A stretch of 64,000 nucleotides of DNA, from the sequence record OZ195934.1; one strand, given 5' to 3'. How positions within the stretch are numbered: the first letter of the stretch is position 1; each line of letters begins with the position of its first letter. The notes beneath the pieces were generated by a model. The model did not search any database, was not told where the DNA came from, and was given only the letters and a program-made list of their open reading frames with translations. A program made the position numbers and the translations under genes. Below are positions 2,509 to 50,892 of this stretch, piece after piece.

Positions 2509-2582
2509 CGGAATTATTCCGTCTCATCTTAGTAGTATTAGTGACTTTAGTGATATTAGAGTAATTAGGGGTATTAGTTTAG
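2509..2582. repeat. Palindrome plus six 9-bp TTAG-N5 direct repeats (copy 1)
   Basis: CGGAA-TTA-TTCCG TCTCATC, then TTAG at 2529, 2538, 2547, 2556, 2565, 2574. Confidence 0.9.
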
Positions 2583-2606
2583 AACCACCGCGAATCGTCG
2601 TATAAT
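2577..2606 (+). promoter_or_regulatory. Class B promoter
   Basis: GTTTAGA-17-TATAAT upstream of glutaredoxin. Confidence 0.7.
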
Positions 2607-2624
2607 ACACGTCGAGGTGATGAA

Positions 2625-2867
2625 ATGATAACAATCTACACAATTCCTAACTGTGACGGTTGCCGACATGCAATCGCACTCTGTAAGTTCAAGAAAATCC
2701 CTTTCGAAGAAATCTCGCTTGATTCTGAAGCTAAAATAGCTGCACTCCATAAACGTCTCGGTGGTAATCGTAACATTCGAGTACCGTTAGCTGTTGACTC
2801 TGACGACACGTATATCGGTCACTTACCAGAGCTTAAACAGTACGTTGATAGCAAGCTGTATAAATAG
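2625..2867 (+). CDS. Glutaredoxin (NrdC/NrdH-like)
   Basis: 80 aa, IYTIPNCDGC (CxxC), VP motif, YIG. Confidence 0.85.
   Translation: MITIYTIPNCDGCRHAIALCKFKKIPFEEISLDSEAKIAALHKRLGGNRNIRVPLAVDSDDTYIGHLPELKQYVDSKLYK
2859..2866 (+). promoter_or_regulatory. T4 late promoter
   Basis: Exact TATAAATA upstream of gene 24. Confidence 0.85.
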
Positions 2868-2924
2868 AAGAAACACGCAAATACTCTCCGCTGAAATGCG
2901 GCAATAAATTAAAGGAACGAACAA

Positions 2925-3824
2925 ATGACTGTATCTATCGGTAACGGTTTACCAGACATTGTTACAGTTCAGAAACGACTATATCCGCTTATCTTTACGG
3001 AAATTGTGTCTGAACAACCAACAAAACAGCCAATCGCGACTGCGTACGGCTTTAAAGCTATCAAAGACACTGACGATTCAAGTGGCTGGGGGCAGTGGAA
3101 ATTCTCGCTTGACCGTTGGTCTGCGACTGCCGAAGCAACAAAGCTAAAAACTGATATCTCTCTTGAAGCTATTCAAGACATGGAAGCACTTGGGCTCGGC
3201 ACTGACTTAATCGTTGACTCACTAGCTGATCAAGCGGCAGATGACATCAACACGAATATCATCACTGCACTGAACGCGATTTCAACACTTGGTACTGCGA
3301 TTGACGTTAGCTCAATCACTGGCAAATTCAACAAAGGCCGTGAGTTGTATGCTCTTGCACACGTCGAAGCTTCTAAACTTGAAAAAGAGTCTGGTTGTCA
3401 GGGTTCGTACATCGTAGCAGGCAGCGAGACATTTGGTCTAATCGTTGGTTCTGGTATGGCAAAACGCATTGGTGAATCGAACGTTTATAAATTAGACTCT
3501 GGTCTTAAACTTGTCCATGACAAGTACGCAACGACTGAATACTTCACAGTTGGCGTTAAGAAAGAAATGTCTGATTTCGAAATCTCAAGTCTGATCTTCA
3601 GTCCGTACAATTTCGATGGCGAAACTGGTGGCGGTATTGCTTATCAGCACGAAGGGCAAGACCCTAAGACATTCAACCCAATCTTTGCGATTATCGCACG
3701 ATACGCACTGACAGTTGCACCGCTTGAATCTGATCAAACGGGCGCTAGTGATATCGATTGGGACGATCTTGGTGACAAGGCTAACAGTTCTAAGCTATCA
3801 GCAACATTTGCCGTAACGCTATAG
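2925..3824 (+). CDS. 24: Capsid vertex protein gp24
   Basis: IFTEIVSEQPTKQPIATAYG, KLKTDISLEAIQD, SLIFSPY, IIARYAL: gp23/gp24 family, 299 aa, late promoter. Confidence 0.8.
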   Translation: MTVSIGNGLPDIVTVQKRLYPLIFTEIVSEQPTKQPIATAYGFKAIKDTDDSSGWGQWKFSLDRWSATAEATKLKTDISLEAIQDMEALGLGTDLIVDSLADQAADDINTNIITALNAISTLGTAIDVSSITGKFNKGRELYALAHVEASKLEKESGCQGSYIVAGSETFGLIVGSGMAKRIGESNVYKLDSGLKLVHDKYATTEYFTVGVKKEMSDFEISSLIFSPYNFDGETGGGIAYQHEGQDPKTFNPIFAIIARYALTVAPLESDQTGASDIDWDDLGDKANSSKLSATFAVTL

Positions 3825-3832
3825 GGTGACAC

Positions 3833-4354
3833 ATGAAAACACATTATGTAGATAATAAAGCTCTATACGCATCGATTTGCGAATGGAAAGAAGAAATGAA
3901 GAACGCTGAAGAAGGCGTTTTCGTGCCAGTCCCTGATTTCGTGGCAATTAGTATCATGAAAATCAGCGAGAACTTGACTCGTCGTTACAACTTTAGCAAT
4001 TACACGCAGCCGTGGAAAGAAGAAATGGTTGGTGATGCGATTGAGCATTGCTTACGCTACGTGAAGAACTTCGACACTGAGCGATTCAAAAACCCACACG
4101 CGTATATCACTCGTATCTGTTTCAATGCATTCGTGCAGCGTATTAAGAAAGAACGCCAAGATACAGCGATTAAATATAAAGTATTCTTGTCAGATTCGTC
4201 AAACTACACCGTTGAGGGTGAAGACGTTGATTTCGACTTCATGCAGCAAATGCTAGAACGCGTGAACTCATTCGACGAATCTCGCAAATCAAACAAATCT
4301 GAATCTGCCCCTAGCAAGAAAGACGATTCGAACTTACAAAAATTTTACGATTAA
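3833..4354 (+). CDS. 55: Late-transcription sigma factor gp55
   Basis: HYVDNKALY, NFSNYT, WKEEMVGDAIE, NPHAYITRICFNAFVQRIKKE. Confidence 0.95.
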   Translation: MKTHYVDNKALYASICEWKEEMKNAEEGVFVPVPDFVAISIMKISENLTRRYNFSNYTQPWKEEMVGDAIEHCLRYVKNFDTERFKNPHAYITRICFNAFVQRIKKERQDTAIKYKVFLSDSSNYTVEGEDVDFDFMQQMLERVNSFDESRKSNKSESAPSKKDDSNLQKFYD

Positions 4355-4363
4355 GGAATTAAC

Positions 4364-5800
4364 ATGTTAGGTACCTTTGACTCATTTCTGAGTGAAAATC
4401 GCCGTCAAACTCAGGGTGGTAAAATCTACCCTAAGTTTGGTCAAGTATTTGTTGAGCTAGGCACAGCTTCTACCGACTTCAGCAAAGAAAAAGGCGTTGA
4501 AACAACTATCGGTATGATGGAAAAAGCGAATGAGCTTAAATCTATCATGCAATCTAAACTATTCGAAGACAGCAACGTTGATCACACTAAATTCGACATG
4601 AATCTAAGTGAAAACGTTTCAGTTATCAACTTGCTAATGGAAGAAGAATTCCTAGCATGTAAGCCGACTGAACTTGCGCAACTAAAGTCGATGACCACTG
4701 TGTCTGAAGCTCGTATGCCAAGTCTTGTCGTGAAAGGCGGTGAACTTACGACTATCGTTAGCGAAGCAACTAAGCTTGGTTACAAAAAGTCTGATATTCA
4801 CGTGATCTTCCCGATGGCTGAAATGAAAATCGAACTTGCTGACAGCGACAAGCTAGTGGTTGAAGCACTATCGTTTGATGGACGTACAGCTACTGAAATT
4901 CTGGCAATGGGTTCTCGCATTCAACTTGGCGACGTTTACGTAGTGAGCGAGTCCGTTGAGTCGAACGCTGACGTGCTAGGTCTTGAAGAGATTCGCATCA
5001 ATCGCATGACGCTTGGCGCTCTTAACCGTCACGTTATGAACTGCTTTGTTGTTAAAGAAGCGGCTGAAACGTCATACGCGCACGCTGCGGTTAAAGAAAT
5101 CACTGATCGCCCTGCGCTATCAGGCTTCAAAGCATACGATTTGAAACCAAACGTGACTATGCTTGAACATGCACAAAACGCATTCTCAAAAGACATTGCT
5201 AAAGCTCCGCTTTCTGCAACTGCATGGGAAAAGCTTGTTGATGTGAAAGAAGTGTATTTCGACAATGGTTGGAAACTGAAGCACAACAACACAAGTCTTG
5301 TTCTAACAAACGCTGAAAACGCTATGCGTCATGGTCGTGTTTGTGAAGAATATCGTGTTGAACTGTCTGAAGCAGGTTATCCGCTTCTTGATATGATCGC
5401 GATGATGGAACGCAACGAAGAAATTCGTTGGGACTGTGCTTCGTTTGCTAAACACATGATGAAATTCGACGGTGCTATCACCCCAGAACGTCAATCTGTG
5501 ACAGCATTTACGACTGAATCATCTTCTAATCGCGTATTCCACCCGCATGTGATGTCTGACCTACGTCCAGTTACTGAAGCGGCAGACGACGTTGACAGCT
5601 TGATTCGTGCTATCGCGAATGATCAGTTCAGTTCATTCAAGATCAGTCAAGCATTCTCTGAGCAGATGCTAGATCAAGAAACGCTTTACTCTATGATGGA
5701 ATCAATCGTTTCTGAAGGTATCGACGTTGACGCTGATGGTGATTTGATTACTTTCAAAGTTAATGCGACTCAGTACCACATTCAACTAGACATTAAGTAG
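4364..5800 (+). CDS. Hypothetical 478-aa protein, likely head-internal; degenerate P-loop-like N-domain
   Basis: Starts MLGTFDSFLSE; several (V/L)xE-A/S sites; see findings. Confidence 0.85.
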   Translation: MLGTFDSFLSENRRQTQGGKIYPKFGQVFVELGTASTDFSKEKGVETTIGMMEKANELKSIMQSKLFEDSNVDHTKFDMNLSENVSVINLLMEEEFLACKPTELAQLKSMTTVSEARMPSLVVKGGELTTIVSEATKLGYKKSDIHVIFPMAEMKIELADSDKLVVEALSFDGRTATEILAMGSRIQLGDVYVVSESVESNADVLGLEEIRINRMTLGALNRHVMNCFVVKEAAETSYAHAAVKEITDRPALSGFKAYDLKPNVTMLEHAQNAFSKDIAKAPLSATAWEKLVDVKEVYFDNGWKLKHNNTSLVLTNAENAMRHGRVCEEYRVELSEAGYPLLDMIAMMERNEEIRWDCASFAKHMMKFDGAITPERQSVTAFTTESSSNRVFHPHVMSDLRPVTEAADDVDSLIRAIANDQFSSFKISQAFSEQMLDQETLYSMMESIVSEGIDVDADGDLITFKVNATQYHIQLDIK

Positions 5801-5806
5801 GGTCAA

Positions 5807-6457
5807 ATGGCTAAATCATTAAACGATTTTCTGACTGAAGTTCAGAAATATAGCTCGGCAGCTACATCTATTCGCGGTAAAGAAGTTGCCGCGTTGGTTA
5901 AACTGTTCAAAGCGGGCATGTTTGTACCGGGTGGCACTGCGCTAGATTACGGTGCGGGTAAGTACGGTCGTAATGCTGAATACTTACGTGGCGAGGGTGT
6001 TCGCACTTACGCATACGACAAGTTCAACGGTACATCGGCAGACGGTTGGGTTGACGTGAGTCTAACAATCCCAGCGGGTCAAATGTTCGATACGTCGTTC
6101 ACGTCGTACGTTCTGAACGTAGTTCCACAAGAAGTCGAAGCTGAAATCATTCGCGAGATTGAATCACTTACGACTGGTAAAGTGTTCCACATTACACGTG
6201 GTTCTGACATCACTCAAACGGTATTCAACGTTATCAGTGGTAAGTCTAAGAACGCAGTGATGATGGAATTCCTTGAAACTGAGCAACCAGATTTGTACGC
6301 TCAAGTTCAAGCAGGTGAAAACTTGAAAGCAGTAGCTAAAGAGATCGCGACTCGCGGTGTCGTTACAGCTAAAGACAGTTTCCAACGCATTCCTGACCTT
6401 TCTCAGTACGGTTACAAACGTTCTGGTTCTGGTGCATCGATGGTGTGGACAAAATAA
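5807..6457 (+). CDS. Class I SAM-dependent methyltransferase
   Basis: ALDYGAGKYGRN (motif I), AYD, FDTSFTSYVLNVV; N-terminus MAKSLNDFLTE. Confidence 0.8.
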   Translation: MAKSLNDFLTEVQKYSSAATSIRGKEVAALVKLFKAGMFVPGGTALDYGAGKYGRNAEYLRGEGVRTYAYDKFNGTSADGWVDVSLTIPAGQMFDTSFTSYVLNVVPQEVEAEIIREIESLTTGKVFHITRGSDITQTVFNVISGKSKNAVMMEFLETEQPDLYAQVQAGENLKAVAKEIATRGVVTAKDSFQRIPDLSQYGYKRSGSGASMVWTK

Positions 6458-6474
6458 TTTCGATTATTTCAATA

Positions 6475-6528
6475 AAAGGGTTGCTTCGGCAACCCTTTTT
6501 GCGTATTATAGCTCTATCGAAACGAAAC
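6475..6528 (+). promoter_or_regulatory. Fused terminator / early promoter cassette (PeSL-like)
   Basis: AAAAGGGTTG-CTTCGG-CAACCCTTTTT hairpin with TTGCTT(6481)-17-TATTAT and ATCGAAACGAAAC. Confidence 0.85.
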
Positions 6529-6532
6529 GACT

Positions 6533-6562
6533 GTTTAATACGTCATCAATCTGTTTTATACT
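6533..6562 (+). promoter_or_regulatory. Class B promoter
   Basis: GTTTAAT-17-TATACT in tandem with the class A promoter. Confidence 0.7.
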
Positions 6563-6588
6563 ATGAATCTACTTGAGAGAACAATATT

Positions 6589-7035
6589 ATGATCTATATT
6601 CAAACTAGCAACATCCTATCTGACGACACTCTTGGCTTTGCGCTTGGTGGTGCCCCTCGTCTCGATACTTTGCCAGAAAAAGAACGCAATAATGTTCTTC
6701 TCAAAGCACTCGAAATCAAACTATATGAACGTCTGCCGTCAACTGCTGTATTCGATCATCTACTTCAAAACTCTATCCCGTTCATCGCGATTCTGAGCGA
6801 TATCGAAGAAATTGCTATGCAGCAATCGATTTGGTTCGAAGCAATTTCGAAGAACAAAGGTATCGATATCATGTACACTGCGATGTCTGACGTTGAACAC
6901 AGCGAAGACACGATGCTAATTGCTGAAGATCGCGACGCTCTAATTCGTCAAGGTCAAGCAGGTGGTCGTATTCTACCATTTAGCACAGAAACGCAGATGC
7001 CATTCATCATCGAGACGCTTAACTTACCTCAATAA
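6589..7035 (+). CDS. Hypothetical protein
   Basis: 148 aa ORF with GAGAG RBS. Confidence 0.8.
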   Translation: MIYIQTSNILSDDTLGFALGGAPRLDTLPEKERNNVLLKALEIKLYERLPSTAVFDHLLQNSIPFIAILSDIEEIAMQQSIWFEAISKNKGIDIMYTAMSDVEHSEDTMLIAEDRDALIRQGQAGGRILPFSTETQMPFIIETLNLPQ

Positions 7036-7044
7036 GGAATCATA

Positions 7045-7419
7045 ATGCAAGAACAGACACCATTAGCTCAAGACACTGACATCGGCGAAGCAGTCGCTGA
7101 CCCTGAAGTTCTTGAGTATCTTGAAAAGCTAAAGCAGCATCGCCAAGAAACTATCGAACGCGAAGCTAATCGTCGCATCAAGAAAAACAAGCGTGAGATT
7201 AAACGTCTGCACAAACACGCTCAGGAATGTCTAATCAATGACAATAAAGACGGTTACATTTATGCTATCGGTAAGCTGCGTAAACTAACTGGTCATGTTG
7301 TCGGTGATGATGTGCTTGAAACTCTATGGCAAACAAGTCGTGAGCAAGTACAAAAGATCGCTGCTTCATTCGCTGAAGCTCAAGCAAACTTGCCTGAAGG
7401 GCAAAATTTCAGTCAATAG
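7045..7419 (+). CDS. a-gt.4: T4 a-gt.4-like conserved protein
   Basis: EANRRIKKNKREIKRLHKHA...YIYAIGKLR. Confidence 0.75.
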   Translation: MQEQTPLAQDTDIGEAVADPEVLEYLEKLKQHRQETIEREANRRIKKNKREIKRLHKHAQECLINDNKDGYIYAIGKLRKLTGHVVGDDVLETLWQTSREQVQKIAASFAEAQANLPEGQNFSQ

Positions 7420-7426
7420 GTGATAC

Positions 7427-7882
7427 ATGAACATCAAGTCAGGCGCTGGTTATCCAGCCAGTGCTTTGTCTAACTTCGCACCTCATTCATTCACACTGGA
7501 TGGGGTTGAATGCGCGTCTATGGAAGGGTTTCTTCAGTCTTTGAAGTTCAAAAACCCTGATATGCAACGTGAAGTCTGCAAATTAGTAGGCAAAGTTGCT
7601 AAAGCACGCGGTGCAAAGAAGAACTGGCAACGCACTCAAACTCTATATTGGCAAGGTGTGCCGATTCAACGTGCTTCTGATGGCTATCAGACGTTGCTTG
7701 ATGATGCATACGCTGCATTAGCTCAGAACGAGAAATTCAAGCGTGCATTACTCGCGACTGGTAAAGCTACTCTTACTCACTCTATCGGGCGTAAGAAGCA
7801 ATCTGAGACGGTTCTAACGGTACAAGAGTTCTGTAGTCGTCTAACTGACATTCGCGACTTTCTTCAAGGGGTAGAATCATGA
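7427..7882 (+). CDS. 30.3: NADAR-family ADP-ribosylhydrolase (T4 gp30.3-like)
   Basis: YPASALSNFAPHSF, SMEGFLQSLKF, FKRALLATG, LTHSIG. Confidence 0.85.
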   Translation: MNIKSGAGYPASALSNFAPHSFTLDGVECASMEGFLQSLKFKNPDMQREVCKLVGKVAKARGAKKNWQRTQTLYWQGVPIQRASDGYQTLLDDAYAALAQNEKFKRALLATGKATLTHSIGRKKQSETVLTVQEFCSRLTDIRDFLQGVES

Positions 7883-8385
7883 GAATGACAAATCTTCGAT
7901 TAGCCTTGAATTCAGTGTTTAAATCGCGTAAAGAAAAGCCTATTCTATATCTCGACATGGACAATGTACTCGTTGATTTTCAGAGTGGTATTGATTCTCT
8001 CTCAATGTGGGAAAAGCATCAATATGATGGCAAATACGACGAATGTCCGGGAATCTTCGCGAACATGAAACCGTATGCAGGTGCTGTTGCAGCGTTTCTA
8101 GCACTGTCTGATCACTTTGACGTGTATATTCTGTCAACTGCTCCGTGGGAAAACCCGGGTGCATGGCAAGATAAGCGCAATTGGGTTCAGCGTTATCTAG
8201 GTGAACGCGCTCATAAGCGTTTGATTCTGTCGCATAACAAAAATCTGAACTTCGGTCATTATCTCGTCGATGATCGCACCGCGAATGGTGCAGGCGAGTT
8301 CATGGGCGAACATATTCACTTTGGCACTGACAAATACCCTGATTGGTCGTCTGTTGTGTCATATCTTTTGAAGGAAATAGAATGA
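7879..8385 (+). CDS. 5'(3')-deoxyribonucleotidase (HAD)
   Basis: LYLDMDNVLVDF, ILSTAPW, LVDDR. Confidence 0.9.
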   Translation: MRMTNLRLALNSVFKSRKEKPILYLDMDNVLVDFQSGIDSLSMWEKHQYDGKYDECPGIFANMKPYAGAVAAFLALSDHFDVYILSTAPWENPGAWQDKRNWVQRYLGERAHKRLILSHNKNLNFGHYLVDDRTANGAGEFMGEHIHFGTDKYPDWSSVVSYLLKEIE

Positions 8386-12352: not shown

Positions 12353-12382
12353 GTTTAGACACTTAAATAGCTGTGTTATTAT
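12353..12382 (+). promoter_or_regulatory. Class B promoter
   Basis: GTTTAGA-17-TATTAT; -10 lies in the loop of a TAGCTGTG/CGCAGCTA inverted repeat. Confidence 0.7.
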
Positions 12383-15245: not shown

Positions 15246-15296
15246 ATGCGCGAAGAAGATTGGGGTTTAGAGTCTGAAGAAGACTGGTTAATCTAA
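15246..15296 (+). CDS. Putative 16-aa acidic microprotein MREEDWGLESEEDWLI
   Basis: GGAG 6 nt upstream of ATG; fills the gap between regA and a terminator. Confidence 0.45.
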   Translation: MREEDWGLESEEDWLI

Positions 15297-15300
15297 TATA

Positions 15301-15321
15301 GGGGCTACACGCCCCTTTTTT
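15301..15321 (+). terminator. Rho-independent terminator
   Basis: GGGGC-TACAC-GCCCC + T6. Confidence 0.85.
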
Positions 15322-15332: not shown

Positions 15333-15860
15333 ATGAACAACGAACGTTTTCAAGAACTATTACAATTCGGTGGCGAATTCGAAGCTGCCGTAGAGCCGAA
15401 GATCGCGAGGGTATTCTGTCATGCAGACCCGATGGCGATGCTTATCAATACGGCTACATCAAAAACAGATGACAAGCATGGGCGTGGTCAACGTCTGATG
15501 TTCTGTCAAGACACATCCGCAAGCTATATGCTACCAGACGTATTTGTTTTCAGTAAAGGAAAGCAGTTCTGCGTCGAAATCAAGTGTAAAAATCGATTCT
15601 TCCGACATAGTGACGGTAAATTGTATGCTGTCATTGACACATATAAGATCAAAGACTACGAAGAAGCGGTTGAGAAGATGAACTTTGACGGCATTTACTA
15701 CGTATTTGGTGATAAGCAGACTCGTTCTGTCTATTTTGCCACTCCCGAACAAGCCAAAGAGATCGTCATTCGACTGGACTCGTTTGTCAGCAAGAAAAAT
15801 CCGAAAGGTCAGTTTCATGCATGGGCAATCGACGAATTACATTCTCTAGGGAAATGGTAG
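15333..15860 (+). CDS. PD-(D/E)XK nuclease-fold protein
   Basis: MLPDVFVF...VEIKCK catalytic motif. Confidence 0.75.
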   Translation: MNNERFQELLQFGGEFEAAVEPKIARVFCHADPMAMLINTATSKTDDKHGRGQRLMFCQDTSASYMLPDVFVFSKGKQFCVEIKCKNRFFRHSDGKLYAVIDTYKIKDYEEAVEKMNFDGIYYVFGDKQTRSVYFATPEQAKEIVIRLDSFVSKKNPKGQFHAWAIDELHSLGKW

Positions 15861-15889
15861 TTTAACAGCTAAACAACGCGTGATAGCAT
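15860..15889 (+). promoter_or_regulatory. Class B promoter for gene 43
   Basis: GTTTAAC-17-TAGCAT. Confidence 0.65.
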
Positions 15890-21110: not shown

Positions 21111-21165
21111 AAAAGGGTTGCTTCGGCAGCCCTTTTTGCGTATTATAGCTCTATCGAAACGAAAC
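21111..21165 (+). promoter_or_regulatory. Fused terminator / early promoter cassette (PeSL-like)
   Basis: Near-identical to 6475; TTGCTT(21118)-17-TATTAT; ATCGAAACGAAAC. Confidence 0.85.
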
Positions 21166-27185: not shown

Positions 27186-27215
27186 GTTTAATCTCATGTG
27201 TTCTGTGCATATAAT
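27186..27215 (+). promoter_or_regulatory. Class B promoter
   Basis: GTTTAAT-17-TATAAT. Confidence 0.7.
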
Positions 27216-27243
27216 GTACAAAACACAACGAGAGAGATTAACA

Positions 27244-27459
27244 ATGGCACATTATGATTGCAGACACTGTGGCGAGTTTGGTTGCTTCGGTGAGTGTAAA
27301 ACTGAAGAAAACCAAGCAGCGAAACGCGCAGAAGAAGCACGCCTTGCACTTGCTAATAAATGGAAAGCTGTCTTGCAAAAAGAAGAAAAGCGTATCTCTG
27401 ACTTAGAAAAAGCGCGTGCATTTTTCTTACTACATGATGAAAAAGGCAACATGAAATGA
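27244..27459 (+). CDS. Small Cys-rich (putative Zn-binding) protein
   Basis: MAHYDCRHCGEFGCFGEC; true start ATG 27244. Confidence 0.7.
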   Translation: MAHYDCRHCGEFGCFGECKTEENQAAKRAEEARLALANKWKAVLQKEEKRISDLEKARAFFLLHDEKGNMK

Positions 27460-29542: not shown

Positions 29543-29559
29543 CTTTTTTCTCGTAATGG

Positions 29560-29608
29560 TTGACTGTATTCTGTATTTAGGTTAGTATCTATCTCATCGA
29601 AACGAAAC
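29560..29608 (+). promoter_or_regulatory. Class A early promoter containing an opposite-strand late promoter
   Basis: TTGACT-17-TAGTAT + ATCGAAACGAAAC; minus-strand CTAAATA at 29574-29580 in the spacer. Confidence 0.75.
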
Positions 29609-34405: not shown

Positions 34406-34427
34406 AGGGCTGAATGAAAGAAAGTGG

Positions 34428-34475
34428 TTGCACGTAACTGATAAAATGCCTATTATAGCTCTATCGAAACGAAAC
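34428..34475 (+). promoter_or_regulatory. Class A early promoter
   Basis: TTGCAC-17-TATTAT + ATCGAAACGAAAC. Confidence 0.8.
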
Positions 34476-35173: not shown

Positions 35174-35628
35174 TGTTCCCGAAGAACTCGCAATACTATG
35201 ACTTGGTGTACCTAGAAATCGCCAAGACATTTGCAAAGAAGAGCACTTGCAGACAGAAGTCTGTAGGTGCGGTCATTGTCAAAAATGACAGAATCATTTC
35301 ACACGGTTACAATGGTGTTCCTGCGGGTATGACACATTGTAATCAAACAGAAGACTATGATGGTTTAACTCATCGACAATGGTCTGAAATTCACGAAATA
35401 CACGCTGAACAGAACGCGCTTTGCTATGCAGCACGCGCAGGTATATCGACTGAGGGCGCAACGATGTATTGCACAGCGTCTCCGTGTCATAACTGCGCAA
35501 AACTGATTGTCGCTTCTGGTATCAAGATCTTAATTGTTGGCTCTGTCTATAGTGGTTCGCAAAAAGACTGGCATGTTTGGTTAGAACAGCGTGGCGTCAC
35601 CGTAATTACTTTTGACGAATTTGTTTAA
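35173..35628 (+). CDS. cd: dCMP deaminase
   Basis: VGAVIV, GYNG, IHAEQNAL, SPCHNC. Confidence 0.95.
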   Translation: MFPKNSQYYDLVYLEIAKTFAKKSTCRQKSVGAVIVKNDRIISHGYNGVPAGMTHCNQTEDYDGLTHRQWSEIHEIHAEQNALCYAARAGISTEGATMYCTASPCHNCAKLIVASGIKILIVGSVYSGSQKDWHVWLEQRGVTVITFDEFV

Positions 35629-35651
35629 TATAAGTAATTCGGAATTACAAT
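35623..35651 (+). promoter_or_regulatory. Class B promoter (16-bp spacer) for queD
   Basis: GTTTAAT-16-TACAAT with a GTAATT/AATTAC inverted repeat. Confidence 0.55.
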
Positions 35652-35675
35652 AGAGACTCAACAAGAGAGATTATT

Positions 35676-36617: not shown

Positions 36618-36647
36618 GTTTAATAGCACGCACCGTCGTGCTATTAT
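36618..36647 (+). promoter_or_regulatory. Class B promoter for folE
   Basis: GTTTAAT-17-TATTAT inside TAATAGCACG/CGTGCTATTA. Confidence 0.7.
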
Positions 36648-38750: not shown

Positions 38751-39662
38751 ATGAGTTCAAATTATGATCAAGTGTCGGCTATTGCTGCTGAACACTTAGG
38801 TAAAAAAGCAGGCGATTACAGTGATTTCGTCGATATTGATACAGTCCGCCCCGATTTGCTAGTGCCAATCCCGCGTGAGCTGAATCGTACTGACTACGAC
38901 ATCACTAATGAAACGTTCGTCGGCTTTGATACATGGCATGGCTTTGAAGTGTCAGCACTGACAGAACAAGGTCTACCTGTCTCTGGTATGGCGAAAGTCG
39001 TATATCCGAGCGATAGTCCGAACATCGTTGAAAGTAAGTCGATGAAATTGTACTGGAATAGCTTCAACATGGCTAAGATTGGTACTGATCGCAATGGCGT
39101 TATGCACGCTATTCAGGTTATTGCATCACGCGACTTGTCAACTATCATCGGTGCACCAGTTCAAGTTACGTTCTTCACTGAGCGCAACACGCATCCGCAT
39201 GGCATGACTGGTTATGCTGAACTTGACAAGTACGTTTCTGATGAAGCAGTGTTCGATTCTGAGCAAGGTGCTGATGCTGATATTCTTGTCGCGTCGCACG
39301 TTAAGCGCATGAACGTGTTCACTCCGAATCTGCGTAGTAACTGTCGTGTTACACATCAACCCGATTTCGGTGATTTGTACATCTTCATGCAAGGTGAATC
39401 AACACCAACGGTTGATAGCTTAATGCAATACATCGTGTCTTTCCGTAAAGAGAATCACTTTCACGAAGAATGTGTGGAAATGATCTACAAAGCGTTGCAA
39501 GACAAGTTCAATCCAGACGATCTAATGGTCACAGCGTTGTATACGCGTCGTGGTGGTTGGAATATCTGTCCCGCTCGTGCGTCAAGCATTGAGCTGTTAC
39601 CGTCGGCTCTAAGTAGTTCTGCGGTCTCGCACACTAACGGTTCTTGTTTATTCCGTCAGTAA
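38751..39662 (+). CDS. queF: Bimodular preQ0 reductase QueF
   Basis: PNIVESKSMKLYWNSFN, LRSNCRVTHQPDFG, FHEECVE, YTRRGG. Confidence 0.92.
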   Translation: MSSNYDQVSAIAAEHLGKKAGDYSDFVDIDTVRPDLLVPIPRELNRTDYDITNETFVGFDTWHGFEVSALTEQGLPVSGMAKVVYPSDSPNIVESKSMKLYWNSFNMAKIGTDRNGVMHAIQVIASRDLSTIIGAPVQVTFFTERNTHPHGMTGYAELDKYVSDEAVFDSEQGADADILVASHVKRMNVFTPNLRSNCRVTHQPDFGDLYIFMQGESTPTVDSLMQYIVSFRKENHFHEECVEMIYKALQDKFNPDDLMVTALYTRRGGWNICPARASSIELLPSALSSSAVSHTNGSCLFRQ

Positions 39663-39673
39663 TAAGAGATATA

Positions 39674-39699
39674 ATGAGCATTCAATAGTGAGTGCTCAT
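39674..39699 (+). other. 11-bp hairpin between queF and queC
   Basis: ATGAGCATTCA-ATAG-TGAGTGCTCAT. Confidence 0.6.
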
Positions 39700-40435: not shown

Positions 40436-41040
40436 TGTGCGGTCTATTCGCTGCAAAGACTAAAAAGGCGCTAGTTGAACTAGCGCAACATAACATGCAT
40501 CGTGGTTCGCGTACGCACTCAGTGACTGGCATTAAAGGCGGTCAGTTGTATGTCAATCGATACGACGGTGAGTTCAGTGCTGACAATGTACCAGACGGGT
40601 ATGACTTCTATATCTGTCACGTGCAAGCACCGACTAGTGCTCACGCAAAGTCACATCCCGCAGTTGTTGTACGCTCAGAGGGCAGACGTAACTTTGCATC
40701 ATGCGTATGGCACAATGGCATTCTGAAAGACGACTACATGAAAAAGCAGCGATATGATTGGGACACCCGGCACATCGCAGACACGTTCCCGCAATCGCTC
40801 GACGAGTACGATGGTACGTTTGCTTGTTTTTACTACGCACTGCGCGAATTAAGCGTGTTTCGTAATGAGATCAGTCCACTGTTCATGAGCGAAGATGGCG
40901 ATGCTTTCAGTAGCACACGAACAATCATAACTCCCGACGCACTTGAACCAAATAAAGTGTTTAACATCGACCTAACGTCGTTTAAAATGTCGCTTGTTAG
41001 AGAGTTCAAAACAGTAGAAAATCCATATTTCTTTTTATGA
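40435..41040 (+). CDS. Free-standing class II (Ntn) glutamine amidotransferase
   Basis: N-terminal MCGLF, HRG, CHVQAPT, WHNGIL, DT, GTFAC; coupled to queC. Confidence 0.85.
   Translation: MCGLFAAKTKKALVELAQHNMHRGSRTHSVTGIKGGQLYVNRYDGEFSADNVPDGYDFYICHVQAPTSAHAKSHPAVVVRSEGRRNFASCVWHNGILKDDYMKKQRYDWDTRHIADTFPQSLDEYDGTFACFYYALRELSVFRNEISPLFMSEDGDAFSSTRTIITPDALEPNKVFNIDLTSFKMSLVREFKTVENPYFFL
40959..40988 (+). promoter_or_regulatory. Class B promoter for the gene 31 operon
   Basis: GTTTAAC-17-TAAAAT inside the 3' end of the GATase gene. Confidence 0.6.
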
Positions 41041-43888: not shown

Positions 43889-43892
43889 AAAC

Positions 43893-45088: not shown

Positions 45089-45100
45089 GGGGCTTTTTTT
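45078..45100 (+). terminator. Rho-independent terminator
   Basis: AAAGCTCC-GTAA-GGGGCTTT + T. Confidence 0.8.
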
Positions 45101-45114
45101 ATGCGAGAAGTAAA

Positions 45115-45708
45115 ATGAAAAAATTCAACGAGTTCGCGAAAGAACTGGAAGAAGCAGCAACTGACATCGTGTATCACGGTACGTCACTGAGTCGAGCTAT
45201 TGAAATATTGTCTACTGACAAGTTCAGATTGAGTGATGCTAAAGGCAGTTGGTCAGATGACACAGACACTGAGATCAACCAGAAGCAAGGCAAAGACAAG
45301 CGATACTACTTGTCAACTGCACGTAGTGCAACTAGCCCGTACATCAATGACCTAGACACGATGATTGACTCGACCACGGCTGACGTTCTCTTTGTCATTG
45401 ATGGTCGCAAGATTAGCCACAACCACAGAACGAAAGCAGTTGACTACGGTCGCGGTGAATATGCATCGGACTATGGTAATGAGCTTGAAGATCGCGTGTT
45501 CAGCAAAAAGCCAGTGATTGATAATGCCTCTAAGTACATCAAAGAAGCACACGTATGGAAGAAATTCTCTAGCAGTTCGTCACACGGCGAGTCGATACTA
45601 GAGAAGTTCCTATCTCAAGCAAAGAGAAAAGGGATTCGCGTGTGGGTGTATGATAATCAACGCGATTGGCAGTCTATGAACAAGAAAAGGGCTGTCTTCA
45701 CTCAATAA
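45115..45708 (+). CDS. Putative ADP-ribosyltransferase-fold protein with capsid-targeting-like N-terminus
   Basis: MKKFNEFAKELEEA; VYHGTS; YLSTARS; NELEDRV. Confidence 0.6.
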   Translation: MKKFNEFAKELEEAATDIVYHGTSLSRAIEILSTDKFRLSDAKGSWSDDTDTEINQKQGKDKRYYLSTARSATSPYINDLDTMIDSTTADVLFVIDGRKISHNHRTKAVDYGRGEYASDYGNELEDRVFSKKPVIDNASKYIKEAHVWKKFSSSSSHGESILEKFLSQAKRKGIRVWVYDNQRDWQSMNKKRAVFTQ

Positions 45709-45717
45709 GAGAGCAAC

Positions 45718-46275
45718 ATGGCATTTTTGAATAGAAAAGAATTGGATACAAGTGAGATAACCGAAGCTGATATGCAATACGCGATTGCAGTGCAGAGTGT
45801 ATGGATCAACAAGCGATACACAGCGATGATACCGAACTGTTTCACCACAGTGACACACGACAACGAAGCTGACTTGTATGGCATTCGACCAAGTGGTCTA
45901 TGTGATGAGATTGAAATCAAGGTATCGAAAGCTGATTTCCGTATCGATGAGAAGAAAACAGTCAAAGTATTAGACGAAGCCGCACCAACACGTTGGAATC
46001 GATACACAGACGTTCTCAAACGCACAGCATTGACCGATGGCAACATGAGCAACTACTTCTGGTATGCTTTCCCTAAAGGGCTTGTAGACCACGCAGACGT
46101 TCCAGATTGGGCAGGCATCATTGAAGTAGATGGCTTACTGAATGCTCATGAAGTAAGAATGCCAAAGCGACTGCATGGTAGAAAGCTGTCAATCGAAGAA
46201 CAACTCAAGCAAATCAAGAAGCTTGGTTACCGATTCTGGAATCTAGTCAAGAAGAACAAATCAAAAGCCCCTTAA
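45718..46275 (+). CDS. MmcB-like PD-(D/E)XK nuclease
   Basis: EADLYG...EIEIKVSKADFRID...NYFWYAFP...WAGII. Confidence 0.8.
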   Translation: MAFLNRKELDTSEITEADMQYAIAVQSVWINKRYTAMIPNCFTTVTHDNEADLYGIRPSGLCDEIEIKVSKADFRIDEKKTVKVLDEAAPTRWNRYTDVLKRTALTDGNMSNYFWYAFPKGLVDHADVPDWAGIIEVDGLLNAHEVRMPKRLHGRKLSIEEQLKQIKKLGYRFWNLVKKNKSKAP

Positions 46276-46288
46276 ATGGGGTTTTTTT
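46264..46288 (+). terminator. Rho-independent terminator
   Basis: AAAAGCCCC-TTAAAT-GGGGTTTTTTT. Confidence 0.85.
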
Positions 46289-46320
46289 AGGTCTAGCGTT
46301 AGCGAAAGGAAATGGTGAGC

Positions 46321-46394
46321 CGGAAAAATTCCGTCTCATCTTAGTAGAATTAGTAGTTTTAGTGAAGTTAGTGGTATTAGAGATATTAGAAGTG
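46321..46394. repeat. Palindrome plus six 9-bp TTAG-N5 direct repeats (copy 2)
   Basis: CGGAA-AAA-TTCCG TCTCATC, then TTAG at 46341, 46350, 46359, 46368, 46377, 46386. Confidence 0.9.
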
Positions 46395-46413
46395 AATTAA
46401 TTCAACAAATTTG

Positions 46414-46443
46414 TTGACAACTCTGAATACTTGATGCTAATAT
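46414..46443 (+). promoter_or_regulatory. Class A early promoter
   Basis: TTGACA-18-TAATAT, then TTGAAACGAAG. Confidence 0.65.
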
Positions 46444-46482
46444 ACAGACTCTTGAAACGAAGAAGTATTTTTGTGAGGTTCT

Positions 46483-47016
46483 ATGAACATTAAAGAAGCT
46501 GAATCTGCACTGCAAGACATTGCACTGCTTTCTGCAAGCGAAGATGACGGTGATATTGCAGTTGTTGTATCTTGTGCGGGTATGAACAACTACTACACTG
46601 TGTGTCCGAGTGAGTTCAAGGACTTTTTGGACAACTATGAGGGCTTGAGTTATGTAGCTTTTGATTGGGTAGGCATCCCTGATGATCTGCAAGATGAAGA
46701 AATCGACTTTGACGGTCTACTAGCATGGTTCAATCTAGATGAATCGCAGCGTGAAATCTGCGAATGTCTCTACGATAACAACGTATGCATGTCTTATGAA
46801 GACGCAGCCGAGAAAGTTGATGAATGTAACATCTTCAACGGCTCTGAAGAAGAGTACGCACAAGAAGTTGTGACTGAATTGATGGGTATCAATCTTGATG
46901 ATATGCCAACAATAGTCAGCTCGAACATCAATTGGGGTGATGTGTTCATCGACTTAGACGCCGATGGTAATATTTACAAACTTGAACACGACAAGTTCTT
47001 AACGACGCAGTTCTAA
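46483..47016 (+). CDS. ardA: ArdA-like antirestriction (DNA mimic) protein
   Basis: Highly acidic; FNGSEEEYAQE...DMPTIVSSNINWGDVFIDL resembles the ArdA C-domain. Confidence 0.65.
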   Translation: MNIKEAESALQDIALLSASEDDGDIAVVVSCAGMNNYYTVCPSEFKDFLDNYEGLSYVAFDWVGIPDDLQDEEIDFDGLLAWFNLDESQREICECLYDNNVCMSYEDAAEKVDECNIFNGSEEEYAQEVVTELMGINLDDMPTIVSSNINWGDVFIDLDADGNIYKLEHDKFLTTQF

Positions 47017-47333
47017 TGTCTTTATTCGATGCAAATATGCGTGCTTTACCACAAGGCTATGAGTTCGTAGCGAACGTGCGCGGAACAGTTAAAGAGCTGT
47101 TGCCGCACGTTGAATCTGGTGATTACGTGCGCTGTAGAATGCTTGATGAGTGCGATAAAACGCCACGCGTTGAAATCATACTCAAATCAGGCAACGTTAT
47201 TCTGCAAGAGACGCTTGGGCGATTCGATGGTTGGTTGACGTACGAGGGTCATATTGACCTAGTGACTGACTATCCGTACGAGCATATTCGTGCAGAAGCT
47301 GTTGAGTTTTTTAAAAGGTACGACAATGAGTAG
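47016..47333 (+). CDS. Hypothetical protein
   Basis: 105 aa, coupled. Confidence 0.7.
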   Translation: MSLFDANMRALPQGYEFVANVRGTVKELLPHVESGDYVRCRMLDECDKTPRVEIILKSGNVILQETLGRFDGWLTYEGHIDLVTDYPYEHIRAEAVEFFKRYDNE

Positions 47334-47901
47334 TACAAGCGGTAACGTCAACAAAGACGATTACTACGCTACGCCTGACTGGTTAGTTACTGAGTTCTTA
47401 TTAGAATTCGAGACCAGAATACAACACGAACATGAGAAGAGCATGGCAGGAATGTATGTGCTTGACCCATCGTGTGGTGGCTGTAGCGAACATGACGCTG
47501 CTTACCCTGTTGCATACAAAGACTTGTATCATGTTGACATCGACACGATGGACATTCGTGAAGACTCGCACGCTCAACGCGTGTGTAACTATCTCGAAAC
47601 GCCAGTCGATATGAAGTATGATATGATCATGACTAATCCTCCATTTAGCTTATCAGTAGATTTTGCTGAAAAAGCGTTATCCGAAGTCGATGATGGTGGG
47701 TATGTCGTGATGTTGCAACGATTAAACTGGTTAGGTAGCATTAAGCGCAAGCCGTTCTGGGACGAAGCTCCGTTAAGAGCAGTGCTTGTGCATCACAGAC
47801 GCCCGAGCTTTCACGGTACGAAAGGCACTGACTCGATTGAGTACGCGCACTTTGTATTCCAGAAAGGTTACACGGGTATAGCAGAGTTGATGGTTATATA
47901 G
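47326..47901 (+). CDS. Amino (N6-adenine-type) DNA methyltransferase
   Basis: DYYATP, VLDPSCGG, MTNPPF, MLQRLNWL; true start ATG 47326. Confidence 0.85.
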   Translation: MSSTSGNVNKDDYYATPDWLVTEFLLEFETRIQHEHEKSMAGMYVLDPSCGGCSEHDAAYPVAYKDLYHVDIDTMDIREDSHAQRVCNYLETPVDMKYDMIMTNPPFSLSVDFAEKALSEVDDGGYVVMLQRLNWLGSIKRKPFWDEAPLRAVLVHHRRPSFHGTKGTDSIEYAHFVFQKGYTGIAELMVI

Positions 47902-47936
47902 CTATTACTCACATTGAAACGAACACGGACTAAACA

Positions 47937-48293
47937 ATGAACCAAGTGAATATTTCATCATGCAACGGCTCAGTAACAGTAAACGGGGTCAGTTACAAAG
48001 GTAACAACGTATCAGTCAGCAACGGCAAAGTCGTTATTGATGGCGTTGCTCAAGGCGACGTAGCCGAATCAAAGAACATCGTGATTACCGTACAAGGTAA
48101 CGTGGGTTCAGTTCAATCACCAGATGGTACTATCATCGTACACGGTGACGTATCTGGTGATGTTCAGTCAACTAATGGCGACATTGAAGCTGAGGGTGTG
48201 GGCGGTAACGTAACTACGACTAATGGCGATGTTGACTGTTGGGAAGTCGCAGGTGCTGTGACTACAACTAACGGTGATATCAATCACAAATAA
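47937..48293 (+). CDS. Beta-helix repeat protein (DUF4097-like)
   Basis: Repeats of G(D/N)V.(S/T)TNGD(I/V). Confidence 0.8.
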   Translation: MNQVNISSCNGSVTVNGVSYKGNNVSVSNGKVVIDGVAQGDVAESKNIVITVQGNVGSVQSPDGTIIVHGDVSGDVQSTNGDIEAEGVGGNVTTTNGDVDCWEVAGAVTTTNGDINHK

Positions 48294-48302
48294 GGAACGA
48301 AT

Positions 48303-48587
48303 ATGTCTGATAAAGACTTCTTTGGTCGCGTCATTAAAGACGGCGACTTTCTATACCGAGCGAAGAACGCAGGTCGTAGCTACACAACTGAGATCATTCT
48401 AGTTGTTGATTGCCCTGATGGTAAGCGTCGCTACGTGGCAGTGACTGGTTACGGCAGCAATGCCAAGCTACCAACGCCGAGTCGTGCAATGATCGTCGAT
48501 CCTAAACTAGTCGAGGTCAATTACAATCCAAATTACCTCAATGCGATTGAAAAAGCAATCACGATGAAAATTCAAAAAATCTCTTGA
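48303..48587 (+). CDS. Hypothetical protein
   Basis: 94 aa; KDFFGRVIKDGD. Confidence 0.75.
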   Translation: MSDKDFFGRVIKDGDFLYRAKNAGRSYTTEIILVVDCPDGKRRYVAVTGYGSNAKLPTPSRAMIVDPKLVEVNYNPNYLNAIEKAITMKIQKIS

Positions 48588-48612
48588 TCAACTGACTTGA
48601 ATAGTGTACACT
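48584..48612 (+). promoter_or_regulatory. Early promoter for the rII region
   Basis: TTGATC-17-TACACT. Confidence 0.65.
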
Positions 48613-48634
48613 GCTCGAAAAGAGGAGTGACACT

Positions 48635-48772
48635 ATGATAGAGAACATGATTCGAGATATGCTAGAGTCTGAAATTGATGTTGAAGACATTCTAGAAACC
48701 TTGACTGAAGAGTATGGCATGGACACTGCTGATGCAGTCGCAGCCATATGTGAAATAGATAATGAAACTTAG
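48635..48772 (+). CDS. Small acidic protein (45 aa) upstream of rIIA
   Basis: MIENMIRDMLESEIDVEDILETLTEEY..., GAGGAG RBS; not in the ORF track. Confidence 0.7.
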   Translation: MIENMIRDMLESEIDVEDILETLTEEYGMDTADAVAAICEIDNET

Positions 48773-48780
48773 AGACAAAT

Positions 48781-50892
48781 ATGATTATTCACACTCCTGA
48801 TTCAACCGTACAAACGTCTGGTAAGATGCGTACGGCTGGTTTTAATATGAAAGCAAGTGCCAAAGGCTTTCGCATCATTTCAACAACGCTTTACAAAGAT
48901 CCAATTCTAGCTATTGTGCGTGAGCTAACGTGTAATGGCTGGGATGCTCATCAAATGAATGGCAACAAAGACACGGCAATCGAAGTACACTTACCGAACC
49001 AGTTTGAACCTTGGTTCAGTGTGAAAGATTTCGGCTGTGGTATGTCTGATGATGATATCTTTGGCGTTTACACAACTGTTTTCGACTCAACGAAAGACGA
49101 CTCGAACGACGTTATTGGCGCAATGGGTCTTGGTTCAAAGACACCGTTCAGCTACAACAACGGTCAATCGTTTACTGTTAAGTCAGTCAAAGACGGTCTG
49201 AAAGCTGTGTACTCTGCATATCTTGATCGTGGTGAGCCTGCTATCACGTGTATGAACGAGCCTGCACCAACTGATGAACCAGATGGCGTAGAAGTTATCG
49301 TTCCTGTGCGTAAAGAAGACTTCAGTCGCTTCAAAGACGCTGCAAACAGTGTAATGCCGTACTTCAAGTCGCCTGTTGTTGACACCAATATCGCGCTAGA
49401 TAAACGCGAGTTCGTACACATGGATGGCTACTACACTGAGACGAAGACTTACCACTATCGTTCAACTAACGTGTACGCAGTGATGGGTAACGTTTGCTAT
49501 CCGCTGAACTCTGGTTACATTGAAGGCATCAATGATGTGCGTAGCTACTTCAAGTCAAGTGATCTATACATTGAATTCGCTATCGGTGAGCTAGATGTAA
49601 GTGCGTCACGTGAAGAGTTGCACTATGATGACCGTACAATCGAGAACATCAATACACGTGTCAATGAAATCAACGAAGGTTTCTTGAAACAGTCGCAAGA
49701 TTGGGTCGATGAGCAGAACTTTAAGCATATCAGTGAAGCATGGCGCGCTTGTGATAATCGCTTCAGTGACGTGATCATGGGTAAGATGATGTTTGGCGAT
49801 GTTAAAGTCAACACATATCGCGACCAAATTCAGCGTGAGTTCTTGATCGATGACAAGCGTGGGCTTGGTGGTAAGACAGTGATGTTCCGTCCAGAGTCAA
49901 TGAACAAAGAGGGCGTTGCGCGTCGTACTGATTATCATCGTGCGTCTGACATTCTTGATGTGCGTCGCGACTTCGAAGCTAAACCAATCATGGTTGTTCA
50001 CGATGACTTGAAGACTGGTGGTGTTAGCATTGTCAAAGAGTACGTTCGTCAAACTCGTAATGCTGTGTATTACCATCACGACGAGAAATACTCAACGACT
50101 GGTACGATTCTGCTGTTGAAAGCGCGTCTGCGTGACAGTGAATACGTTGTGCTTAAAACGTCTGACTTGAAAGCTGACTACACGCCAGAGAAGAAGCCGA
50201 AGAGCAAGAACGCCAAACCAGTAGCGCGTACTGTTCAACTGTATCGCGTGACGATTGGTGAAGACGACGTGCGCTCGATTGATGTTCATGAGCTTGATAA
50301 GAAAGTTCTACGTGAAGATGGTGTTCACTTCGTGAGCTTGTATCGTGACTACATCGAACGCAACATCGGTGATGAACATGGCATGGAATACAATCGCGGT
50401 GTTGGTCTTGTTGAAACGATCATGCGTCTGAAAAATCTTAAAGAAGTGTATATCGTGCGTCGTGGTGAGATTGAACACATCAAATCAAACAAGAACGCGA
50501 TTAATCTTTTCGATTTGAAGTTTAACAAGCGTGAAGTACGTAGTAAAATCGACTGGAAGACGTACACGATCACTGACAATCTACACGGGTGGCGTTGTGC
50601 GCTTAAATCTGCGTGGTACAATGATGCAGTGCGCGAGTGCTTCGGCTATGAACGTACCGAACACACATGCAACACAACTATCGACCGTTTGTGTTCTGAA
50701 TTCCCAGTTATCAAGCAAGTGCGCGAAGCTGAGAAAGAAAAGCATTTAGCGAAACTGATGAAGATTCAAGAGAATCCGCGCTATCAGTTAGCATGGAACT
50801 TGATTGACAACTGCACGTCTAATTCAGATGCGCAACAACTAATGACCCTATTGAGAGGAAAACGTAATGGTAAACTTACCAATCGAAACTAA
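48781..50892 (+). CDS. rIIA: rIIA protein
   Basis: LYKDPILAIVRELTCNGWDAH, VKDFGCGMS, STK, IGAMGLGSKTPFSY (GHKL). Confidence 0.95.
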   Translation: MIIHTPDSTVQTSGKMRTAGFNMKASAKGFRIISTTLYKDPILAIVRELTCNGWDAHQMNGNKDTAIEVHLPNQFEPWFSVKDFGCGMSDDDIFGVYTTVFDSTKDDSNDVIGAMGLGSKTPFSYNNGQSFTVKSVKDGLKAVYSAYLDRGEPAITCMNEPAPTDEPDGVEVIVPVRKEDFSRFKDAANSVMPYFKSPVVDTNIALDKREFVHMDGYYTETKTYHYRSTNVYAVMGNVCYPLNSGYIEGINDVRSYFKSSDLYIEFAIGELDVSASREELHYDDRTIENINTRVNEINEGFLKQSQDWVDEQNFKHISEAWRACDNRFSDVIMGKMMFGDVKVNTYRDQIQREFLIDDKRGLGGKTVMFRPESMNKEGVARRTDYHRASDILDVRRDFEAKPIMVVHDDLKTGGVSIVKEYVRQTRNAVYYHHDEKYSTTGTILLLKARLRDSEYVVLKTSDLKADYTPEKKPKSKNAKPVARTVQLYRVTIGEDDVRSIDVHELDKKVLREDGVHFVSLYRDYIERNIGDEHGMEYNRGVGLVETIMRLKNLKEVYIVRRGEIEHIKSNKNAINLFDLKFNKREVRSKIDWKTYTITDNLHGWRCALKSAWYNDAVRECFGYERTEHTCNTTIDRLCSEFPVIKQVREAEKEKHLAKLMKIQENPRYQLAWNLIDNCTSNSDAQQLMTLLRGKRNGKLTNRN
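50520..50549 (+). promoter_or_regulatory. Class B promoter inside rIIA (for rIIB)
   Basis: GTTTAAC-17-TAAAAT. Confidence 0.55.

Follow-up and report, generated by a model that had tools for sequence, protein, structure and literature searches.

We analyzed a 64,000-nt stretch of a vibriophage genome (hereafter the window; OZ195934.1 positions 62001–126000, plus strand) for promoters carrying a GTTTA element in their −35 region. Judged from the sequence comparisons, the sites are real, conserved promoters consisting of (T/A)GTTTA at −37 to −32, any base but rarely C at −31, a 17-bp and sometimes 16-bp spacer, and TAnnnT. We consider it fairly likely, with a probability of about 0.65, that they are resident promoters read by the host sigma70 holoenzyme and not by a new phage factor. 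A preliminary description of the window had interpreted them as a distinct regulon that has a recognition element to itself and had mentioned, as a caveat, that sigma70 alone may read such sites. The caveat is the better reading; the separate regulon is not supported, given the geometry typical of T4 early promoters, the exchange between −35 types, the freedom of position −31, and the use of a GTTTA promoter by the operon that encodes AsiA.

The window is identical in sequence to Vibrio phages D483, K575 and 6E35.1a (host V. crassostreae) and has ~80% nucleotide identity with KVP40; its source is a KVP40-like schizoT4 vibriophage with a genome of 253.9 kb. For comparison, we used the whole genomes of the D483 record, KVP40, nt-1, 1.081.O, F86, the distant schizoT4 vibriophage D479, the Aeromonas phage Aeh1, and T4. 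We traced 29 curated promoters through D483, KVP40, nt-1, 1.081.O and F86 (below, the five genomes), which gave 112 orthologous instances. The gene names glutaredoxin, PTPS/queD-like and Alc were checked with Pfam and the remaining labels against the KVP40 annotation.

The pattern GTTTAR-N18-TANNNT was found 12 times in the window, compared with 1.03 expected, and none of 100 shuffles gave 12 or more. Eleven of the 34 plus-strand GTTTAR words were exactly 18 nt upstream of a TANNNT, with any other distance occurring 0–3 times and the minus strand contributing 1, and the strand bias of the matches tracked the direction of transcription. No distance peak was seen in the window for [ACT]TTTAR, indicating that the G at −36 is required. 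An unbiased scan of the whole D483 genome, covering all 5-mers at all distances from TANNNT, ranked GTTTA located 19 nt upstream first (53 vs. 9.4, z = 13.8) and GGTTG/GTTGC second; GTTTA was again first in KVP40 (47 vs. 9.7). The genome-wide enrichment analysis that the preliminary description had proposed as a check thus identified GTTTA as the strongest upstream partner of TAnnnT.

Nine sites had been listed for the window, and every one was found on reading the sequence. With the −35 hexamer defined as TTTARN behind the G at −36, the claimed spacing also held, the spacer being 17 bp at eight sites and 16 bp at the one before the queD-like gene. All nine have a counterpart in KVP40, but two conserved sites, before queC and dda, had been left out (Table 1). 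Four further matches to the pattern, at 7917, 15265, 42732 and 26526 (minus strand), were rejected as promoters since they are without conservation and look like chance. The match at 15265–15294 (GTTTAG-N18-TAATCT) is followed 5 nt on by a strong intrinsic terminator (15300–15316) and is not conserved in KVP40, making it probably a chance match.

Among the sites with a 17-bp spacer that could be aligned to KVP40, both boxes were kept gap-free in 24 of 39 (62%), whereas control spacings gave 10 of 69 (14%; Fisher p = 9e-7). Clean footprints came from intergenic copies (nrdH, 43, gene 1, phoH and 0359-asiA), where the spacers are unrelated between genomes and the boxes fixed. GTTTA itself was retained in 110 of the 112 orthologous instances. 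The distance from GTTTAN to the −10 was 18 in 90 of them and 17 in 20; the −10 was TATAAT or TAAAAT in most; and position −37 was occupied by T (76) or A (34). At −31, we counted 54 A, 27 G, 24 T and 5 C. The restriction of the sixth base to A or G in the preliminary description was therefore too narrow: the position varies freely between orthologues, and what appeared as [A/G] is really "rarely C." For the same reason, we rejected a division into core GTTTAR and early-type GTTTAC subclasses, as −31 shifts among A, G, T and C at the orthologous uvsY, phoH, dsbA and 52 promoters, leaving only the depletion of C.

Over the whole genome, a conserved GTTTA promoter was located in front of uvsY, rnh, dsbA, 32 (two promoters), an open reading frame (ORF) before the ligase gene, nrdH, the 47/46 operon, 45.2-45-44-62, 43, the queD-like gene, folE, queC, 31.1-31, rIIB (within rIIA), dda, tk, a NAPRTase gene, 52, queE, phoH, the 0359-asiA operon, 57A (within gene 1), gene 1 and the tRNA cluster. 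The T4 middle promoters tabulated by Hinton (PMC2988021, Table 1) include PrIIB1/2, Pdda.1, P43, P45.2, P46/P47, PtRNA, P57A, P1, PuvsY, P31, P32, PdsbA and P52. Thirteen positions match between the two lists (rIIB, dda, 43, 45.2, 47/46, tRNA, 57A, 1, uvsY, 31, 32, dsbA and 52), among them promoters lying within upstream genes. The proposed association with genes that are middle-mode in T4 was thus correct and extends further than had been claimed. The inclusion of the 7-deazaguanine genes was likewise confirmed, with the queD-like gene, folE, queC and queE each having a GTTTA promoter of its own.

The shared gene positions do not extend to the MotA component of the T4 middle system. Searches with PF09114 and PF09158 gave no match for motA in D483, KVP40, D479 or Aeh1, with T4 as positive control giving E values of 3e-63 and 7e-71. 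The MotA box, TGCTT, was not among the signals of the 5-mer scan in D483 or KVP40, and the same scan recovered it in T4 (z = 4.5); the absence of the box, noted in the preliminary description, is thereby upheld and accompanied by the absence of a detectable motA gene. AsiA, in contrast, is encoded (PF09010, E = 4.8e-36 in D483) and is also present in nt-1, 1.081.O, F86 and VH7D. The asiA operon, located outside the window (record 193185–194512), has three genes, encoding a 243-amino-acid protein (phrog_15600) with an acidic C-terminal tail, AsiA, and a Tad2-like Thoeris antidefense protein (PF11195, E = 2e-25). This operon, whose AsiA is an early function in T4, starts with a GTTTAG-N18-TAAAAT promoter that immediately follows an intrinsic terminator in each of D483, KVP40, nt-1 and F86, and at least this copy must therefore fire before AsiA exists. 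In Aeh1, which has AsiA and no MotA, TTGAC or GTTTAC promoters precede 45, 43, 52 and tk.

The comparison with T4 argues for recognition by the host polymerase. The −35 region of T4 early promoters is GTTTAC at −36 to −31 (PMC1524935), and these promoters are read by host polymerase without phage proteins (PMC1524935, PMC2988021). In our scan of T4, GTTTA 19 nt before TANNNT again ranked first, with 49 matches on the early strand and the form GTTTAC in 38 of 60 on both strands, and the MotA box was recovered 6 bp further downstream. Moreover, GTTTA and GTTGC/GTTGA boxes interchange at orthologous promoters of both architectures found in these genomes, the GTTTA type and a cassette type that we call class A. 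The class A promoter at record position 185258 has GGTTTAC in D483 and F86 and GGTTGCG in KVP40, and the one at 137229 has GGTTTAC in D483 and GGTTGCA in KVP40; the uvsY promoter has GTTTAN in four genomes and GTTGAT in F86. At the tRNA cluster, GTTTAC and GTTTAA promoters occur side by side in one array and have the same A-rich regions upstream.

Under the preferred reading, region 4 of host sigma70 would bind the (T)GTTTA box, as in T4 early promoters, and read it directly from the start of infection, with transcription beginning ~7 nt after the −10. As they have no A-rich upstream element, extended −10, or consensus G at −33 and C at −31, the GTTTA promoters would probably be weaker than the class A promoters, which drive variable early genes. 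They would stay active during the prereplicative period and give way to AsiA and the late system. The set represents the resident promoters of the conserved prereplicative genes of KVP40-like phages, which comprise asiA, the tRNAs, and genes for replication, recombination and the synthesis of nucleotides and 7-deazaguanine, and the 7-deazaguanine synthesis genes, each having its own GTTTA promoter, would be co-expressed with the replication genes. What had been described as two classes would be a single machinery acting on two architectures, one made up of plain resident promoters and the other of cassettes of terminator, promoter and leader that recombine.

Several observations weigh against this reading. 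The consensus base at −31 for both sigma70 and T4 early promoters is C, which is depleted here, being found in 5 of 110 instances and, among the D483 promoters, in 1 of 29 (binomial p = 0.009); this hints at selection for something besides the best fit to sigma70. Neither the G at −36 nor the T at −33 belongs to the sigma70 consensus, yet both are invariant. The extended −10 motif TGn was found in 4 of 26 GTTTA promoters vs. 32 of 48 in T4 (Fisher p = 3e-5). The fraction of A at −46 to −38 is 0.37 and only slightly raised over the D483 genome (0.29), compared with 0.46 at T4 early promoters (T4 genome 0.32); it is 0.57 in the class A and tRNA promoters. A generic TTGACA/TATAAT scan of the window showed no enrichment (28 vs. 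33.5 expected). The signal therefore resides in a phage-specific box, and "ordinary sigma70 promoter" alone does not describe it. Finally, AsiA has been retained without MotA, and the KVP40 AsiA is able to co-activate with T4 MotA in vitro (PMC2988021), which together leave room for a partner of AsiA.

In an alternative reading, the sites form a true middle class: AsiA would remodel sigma70 region 4, and a MotA-like phage activator would bind (T)GTTTA at −37 to −32 and recruit the polymerase, making the promoters dependent on phage protein synthesis. The alternative accommodates the thirteen coincidences with MotA-dependent T4 promoters and the five consecutive invariant bases, two of them outside the sigma70 consensus, with C depleted behind them. 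The presence of asiA without a detectable motA suits it as well, and reviews leave open whether phages with AsiA and no MotA have a MotA analogue or use AsiA solely as an inhibitor (PMC2988021). D479 is in line with it too, having asiA and no genome-wide enrichment of GTTTA, though the box is retained at part of its core genes. The best −35-like words of D479 are GTTGC, TTGCC and TTGTC at a distance one base shorter, and its promoter code seems, from these words, to differ from that of the KVP40-like phages. A possible activator is the 243-amino-acid product of the first gene of the asiA operon (gp0359, record 193185–193916), which is co-transcribed with asiA, 86–88% identical across the KVP40-like phages, and has a 42% identical homologue near asiA in D479. 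As a MotA analogue, however, it gained no support: it has no Pfam match and only close homologues, and its AlphaFold model has a mean pLDDT (predicted local distance difference test) of 36. The GTTTA box also is at the canonical −35, with the canonical 17-bp spacer, and 6 bp upstream of the position of the MotA box; for that reason, with the two boxes 6 bp apart relative to the −10, we rejected the likeness of TGTTTA to the MotA box TGCTTTA as positional evidence. A middle class is further disfavored by GTTTA being the hallmark of T4 early promoters, which need no phage protein, by its use in asiA's own operon behind a terminator, by its exchange with GTTGC/GTTGA, and by the mixture of GTTTAC and GTTTAA at the tRNA cluster. 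We regard such a class as quite unlikely, and the specific form of it in which KVP40-like phages keep AsiA for sigma appropriation with a nonhomologous partner (the 243-amino-acid product or another early protein) that reads (T)GTTTA at ~30 promoters as a long shot. If true, it would mean a second, independently evolved middle-transcription system at the positional counterparts of the MotA-dependent promoters of T4.

A phage-specific effect could also arise without new protein synthesis, if the host holoenzyme fires immediately with its alpha subunit ADP-ribosylated by injected Alt and the T at −33 marks the promoters favored in this state. A gene for an Alt-like ADP-ribosyltransferase lies at 1–858 on the minus strand of the window, T at −33 was kept in 110 of 112 instances, and in T4 position −33 has been proposed as a preferred contact of Alt-modified alpha, with some early promoters stimulated about two-fold (PMC1524935, PMC2988021). 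No single promoter position explains the effect of Alt in T4, however (PMC2988021), and the GTTTA promoters are only weakly A-rich in the upstream region contacted by alpha. We consider tuning by Alt unlikely. That the motif is a mere by-product of base composition or coding constraint has a probability close to negligible. Several matches do lie within genes (rIIA, the ORF before dda, gene 59 and gene 1), and a few conserved ones are explained otherwise, being in a terminase gene (1693, minus strand), on a terminator hairpin (63599, minus strand) or the reverse of a cassette leader (158284, minus strand). Such an origin is nevertheless contradicted by the excess over shuffled sequences, the single sharp distance peak with a strand bias following transcription, the difference in conservation from control spacings, and the intergenic copies whose boxes outlast their spacers. 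Reading by host sigma70 keeps our preference among these accounts.

The class A promoters have an A/T-rich upstream region, a −35 of GGTTGC or GGTTGAC, often a G3...C3T4 stem-loop across the −35, a −10 of TAWWAT, and a start region agctctATCGAAAC(GAAAC). The promoter-early stem-loop (PeSL) described in nt-1 and KVP40 has the form TTGYVH-N17-TAWWAT with a stem-loop A3-4G3...C3T3-4 (Comeau, Arbiol & Krisch 2014, PMC4122927), and by its sequence features class A is this published family. We counted ~14–15 copies in the whole genome. Most copies have one flank or both without a match in relatives; at syntenic places, some relatives have the cassette and others do not, a pattern to be expected of cassettes that recombine within variable regions. 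Class A promoters share a conserved sequence at the transcript start, ATCGAAAC(GAAAC), 6–8 nt downstream of the −10 and found in ~14 copies genome-wide, which may be a leader with a role in the stability, processing or translation of the RNA. The separation into two promoter classes in the preliminary description holds as two recognizable architectures, but it does not partition the genes cleanly: alc, the pseT operon and cd are also behind class A promoters, and GTTTA promoters are likewise found before ORFans, before genes that have no counterpart in T4, and before the tRNA cluster.

Next to some promoters, we observed a dispersed element present in six copies in D483 and six in KVP40. It consists of a conserved hairpin with a 9-bp stem, GAGGCGGAA-AAA-TTCCGTCTC, followed immediately by five to six tandem 9-bp units TTAG(T/A)(G/A)NNN. 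Three of the copies adjoin GTTTA promoters (nrdH, uvsY and gene 1), another lies in front of a TTGACA promoter, and a further copy is beside a late promoter before wac; a regular-expression search of D479 found none. In one KVP40 copy the stem has undergone a compensatory change from GCGGAA/TTCCGC to GCCCAA/TTGGGC. We rejected a coding function, as the frames differ between copies, the KVP40 copies have no start codons, and the compensatory change would be nonconservative for a peptide. The element may represent an array bound by a regulator or a set of iterons like those of an origin.

Some annotations in the public record are likely to be problematic. The coding sequence (CDS) at 27196–27459 probably has its start at 27244, an in-frame ATG that follows the promoter and a GAGAG ribosome site, and the small "hypothetical" CDSs at 2504–2605 (on the TTAG array and promoter) and 6481–6576 (on a PeSL and a GTTTA promoter) are likely annotation problems. 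Instead of the classical AGGAGG, many early genes share an atypical sequence around the ribosome site, (A)AGAGAGA(A/T)NATTATG (e.g., 1010–1022, 6575–6588, 35662–35675 and 52024–52036).

Table 1. Promoters and associated elements; positions refer to the window unless given as record positions
Feature	Position	Strand	Context	Conservation and remarks
GTTTAG-N18-TATAAT	2577..2606	+	19 nt 5' of nrdH/glutaredoxin (Pfam); adjoins hairpin and 9-bp TTAG repeat array	kept in KVP40, nt-1, 1.081.O, F86; spacer entirely different
GTTTAA-N18-TATACT	6533..6562	+	heads operon running into genes 47 and 46; 53 bp 3' of class A/PeSL promoter	retained in KVP40 and F86; neighboring PeSL missing from KVP40 and nt-1
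GTTTAG-N18-TATTAT with TGn	12353..12382	+	before 45.2-45-44-62	five genomes; T4 P45.2 in same place
GTTTAA-N18-TAGCAT	15860..15889	+	before gene 43 DNA polymerase	kept in KVP40, 1.081.O, F86; spacer unrelated; T4 counterpart P43
GTTTAA-N18-TATAAT	27186..27215	+	before small ORF, likely start ATG 27244	KVP40
GTTTAA-N17-TACAAT, 16-bp spacer	35623..35651	+	before PTPS/queD-like gene (PF01242 match)	16-bp geometry retained in KVP40, nt-1, F86
GTTTAA-N18-TATTAT	36618..36647	+	before folE	KVP40, 1.081.O, F86
GTTTAT-N18-TATAAT	39646..39675	+	before queC/exsB	KVP40, 1.081.O, F86; absent from preliminary description
GTTTAA-N18-TAAAAT	40959..40988	+	within 3' end of preceding gene, before 31.1 ... 31	five genomes; T4 P31
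GTTTAA-N18-TAAAAT	50520..50549	+	within rIIA, 318 nt 5' of rIIB	five genomes; T4 PrIIB1/PrIIB2 likewise within rIIA
GTTTAT-N18-TATAAT	55557..55586	+	within preceding ORF, ~300 nt 5' of dda	five genomes; T4 Pdda.1; absent from preliminary description
Class A/PeSL-type: A-rich upstream, GGTTGC, TAATAT, leader ATCGAAAC	950..993	+	before alc (Pfam)	
Class A/PeSL cassette, stem-loop overlapping −35	6480..6523	+		absent at same place in KVP40 and nt-1
Class A/PeSL cassette	21117..21160	+		
Class A promoter: GGTTGAC, TAGTAT, leader ATCGAAAC	29559..29603	+		
Class A promoter	34427..34470	+	before ORFs leading into cd	absent at same place in KVP40
Class A/PeSL cassette	51976..52019	+	3' of rIIB	
Start sequences ATCGAAAC(GAAAC)	986-998, 6516-6528, 21153-21165, 29596-29608, 34463-34475, 52012-52019			
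Hairpin/TTAG copies in window (two of the six listed below by record position)	2500-2577, 46311-46389			
Hairpin/TTAG copies, record positions	64529, 108341, 159002, 247746	+		
Hairpin/TTAG copies, record positions	221811, 22624	−		

Promoters with a GTTTA −35 are already known in T4 and its relatives, as are PeSLs in nt-1 and KVP40. In the literature consulted, we found no account of a conserved GTTTA set in KVP40-like phages, of its base-by-base constraint, or of its positional match to T4 middle promoters. The KVP40 genome paper is said to have identified no features of early- and middle-mode transcription. Our analysis defines a conserved set of ~30 promoters, 11 of them in the window, with base-by-base constraint over five genomes and at the positions of T4 middle promoters, and with this set the question of a MotA analogue vs. 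an AsiA acting only as inhibitor becomes directly testable in vitro. As the GTTTA promoters occupy the positions held by MotA/AsiA promoters in T-even phages, the boundaries of the transcription units have been kept with the means of recognition differing between lineages, which suggests that in T4-like phages these boundaries are older than the machinery reading them. A further gain is in annotation, with several small "hypothetical" ORFs sitting on regulatory elements.

Among the known systems, the GTTTA set shares with T4 early promoters the G at −36 followed by TTTA, a GTTTAC-like −35 with a 17 (±1)-bp spacer to TAnnnT, the same 19-nt peak in T4, D483 and KVP40, and a preference for T or A just upstream. 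It differs in −31, mostly C in T4 (38 of 60) and rarely C here, in mostly missing TGn and the A-rich, UP-like region (approximately −40 to −60), and in its genes, which T4 serves from middle promoters and which are not host-takeover ORFans. With T4 middle promoters, it has in common thirteen gene-map positions before replication, recombination and nucleotide genes, a −10 of the sigma70 type, and the encoded AsiA. Here, however, TGCTT at −31 to −27 is missing and no motA was found, and the conserved element is 6 bp further upstream, as an ordinary −35.

The PeSL cassettes and class A agree in the A-rich upstream region, the G3...C3T3-4 stem-loop, the form TTGYVH-N17-TAWWAT, and gain and loss between relatives. 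The GTTTA promoters, in contrast, are without stem-loop, leader ATCGAAAC and A-tract and are positionally stable over the five genomes, which sets them apart from the cassettes. The T4 relatives RB49, RB43 and Aeh1 (Nolan et al. 2006), which have no MotA and of which Aeh1 has asiA, similarly have promoters of a sigma70-like type, at core genes as well as at novel ones. The early promoters of these relatives prefer G at −33, as GTTGAC (Nolan et al. 2006, PMC1524935), which our scan confirmed for Aeh1, whereas the KVP40-like phages keep T at −33 for their core genes and have G only in the PeSL cassettes.

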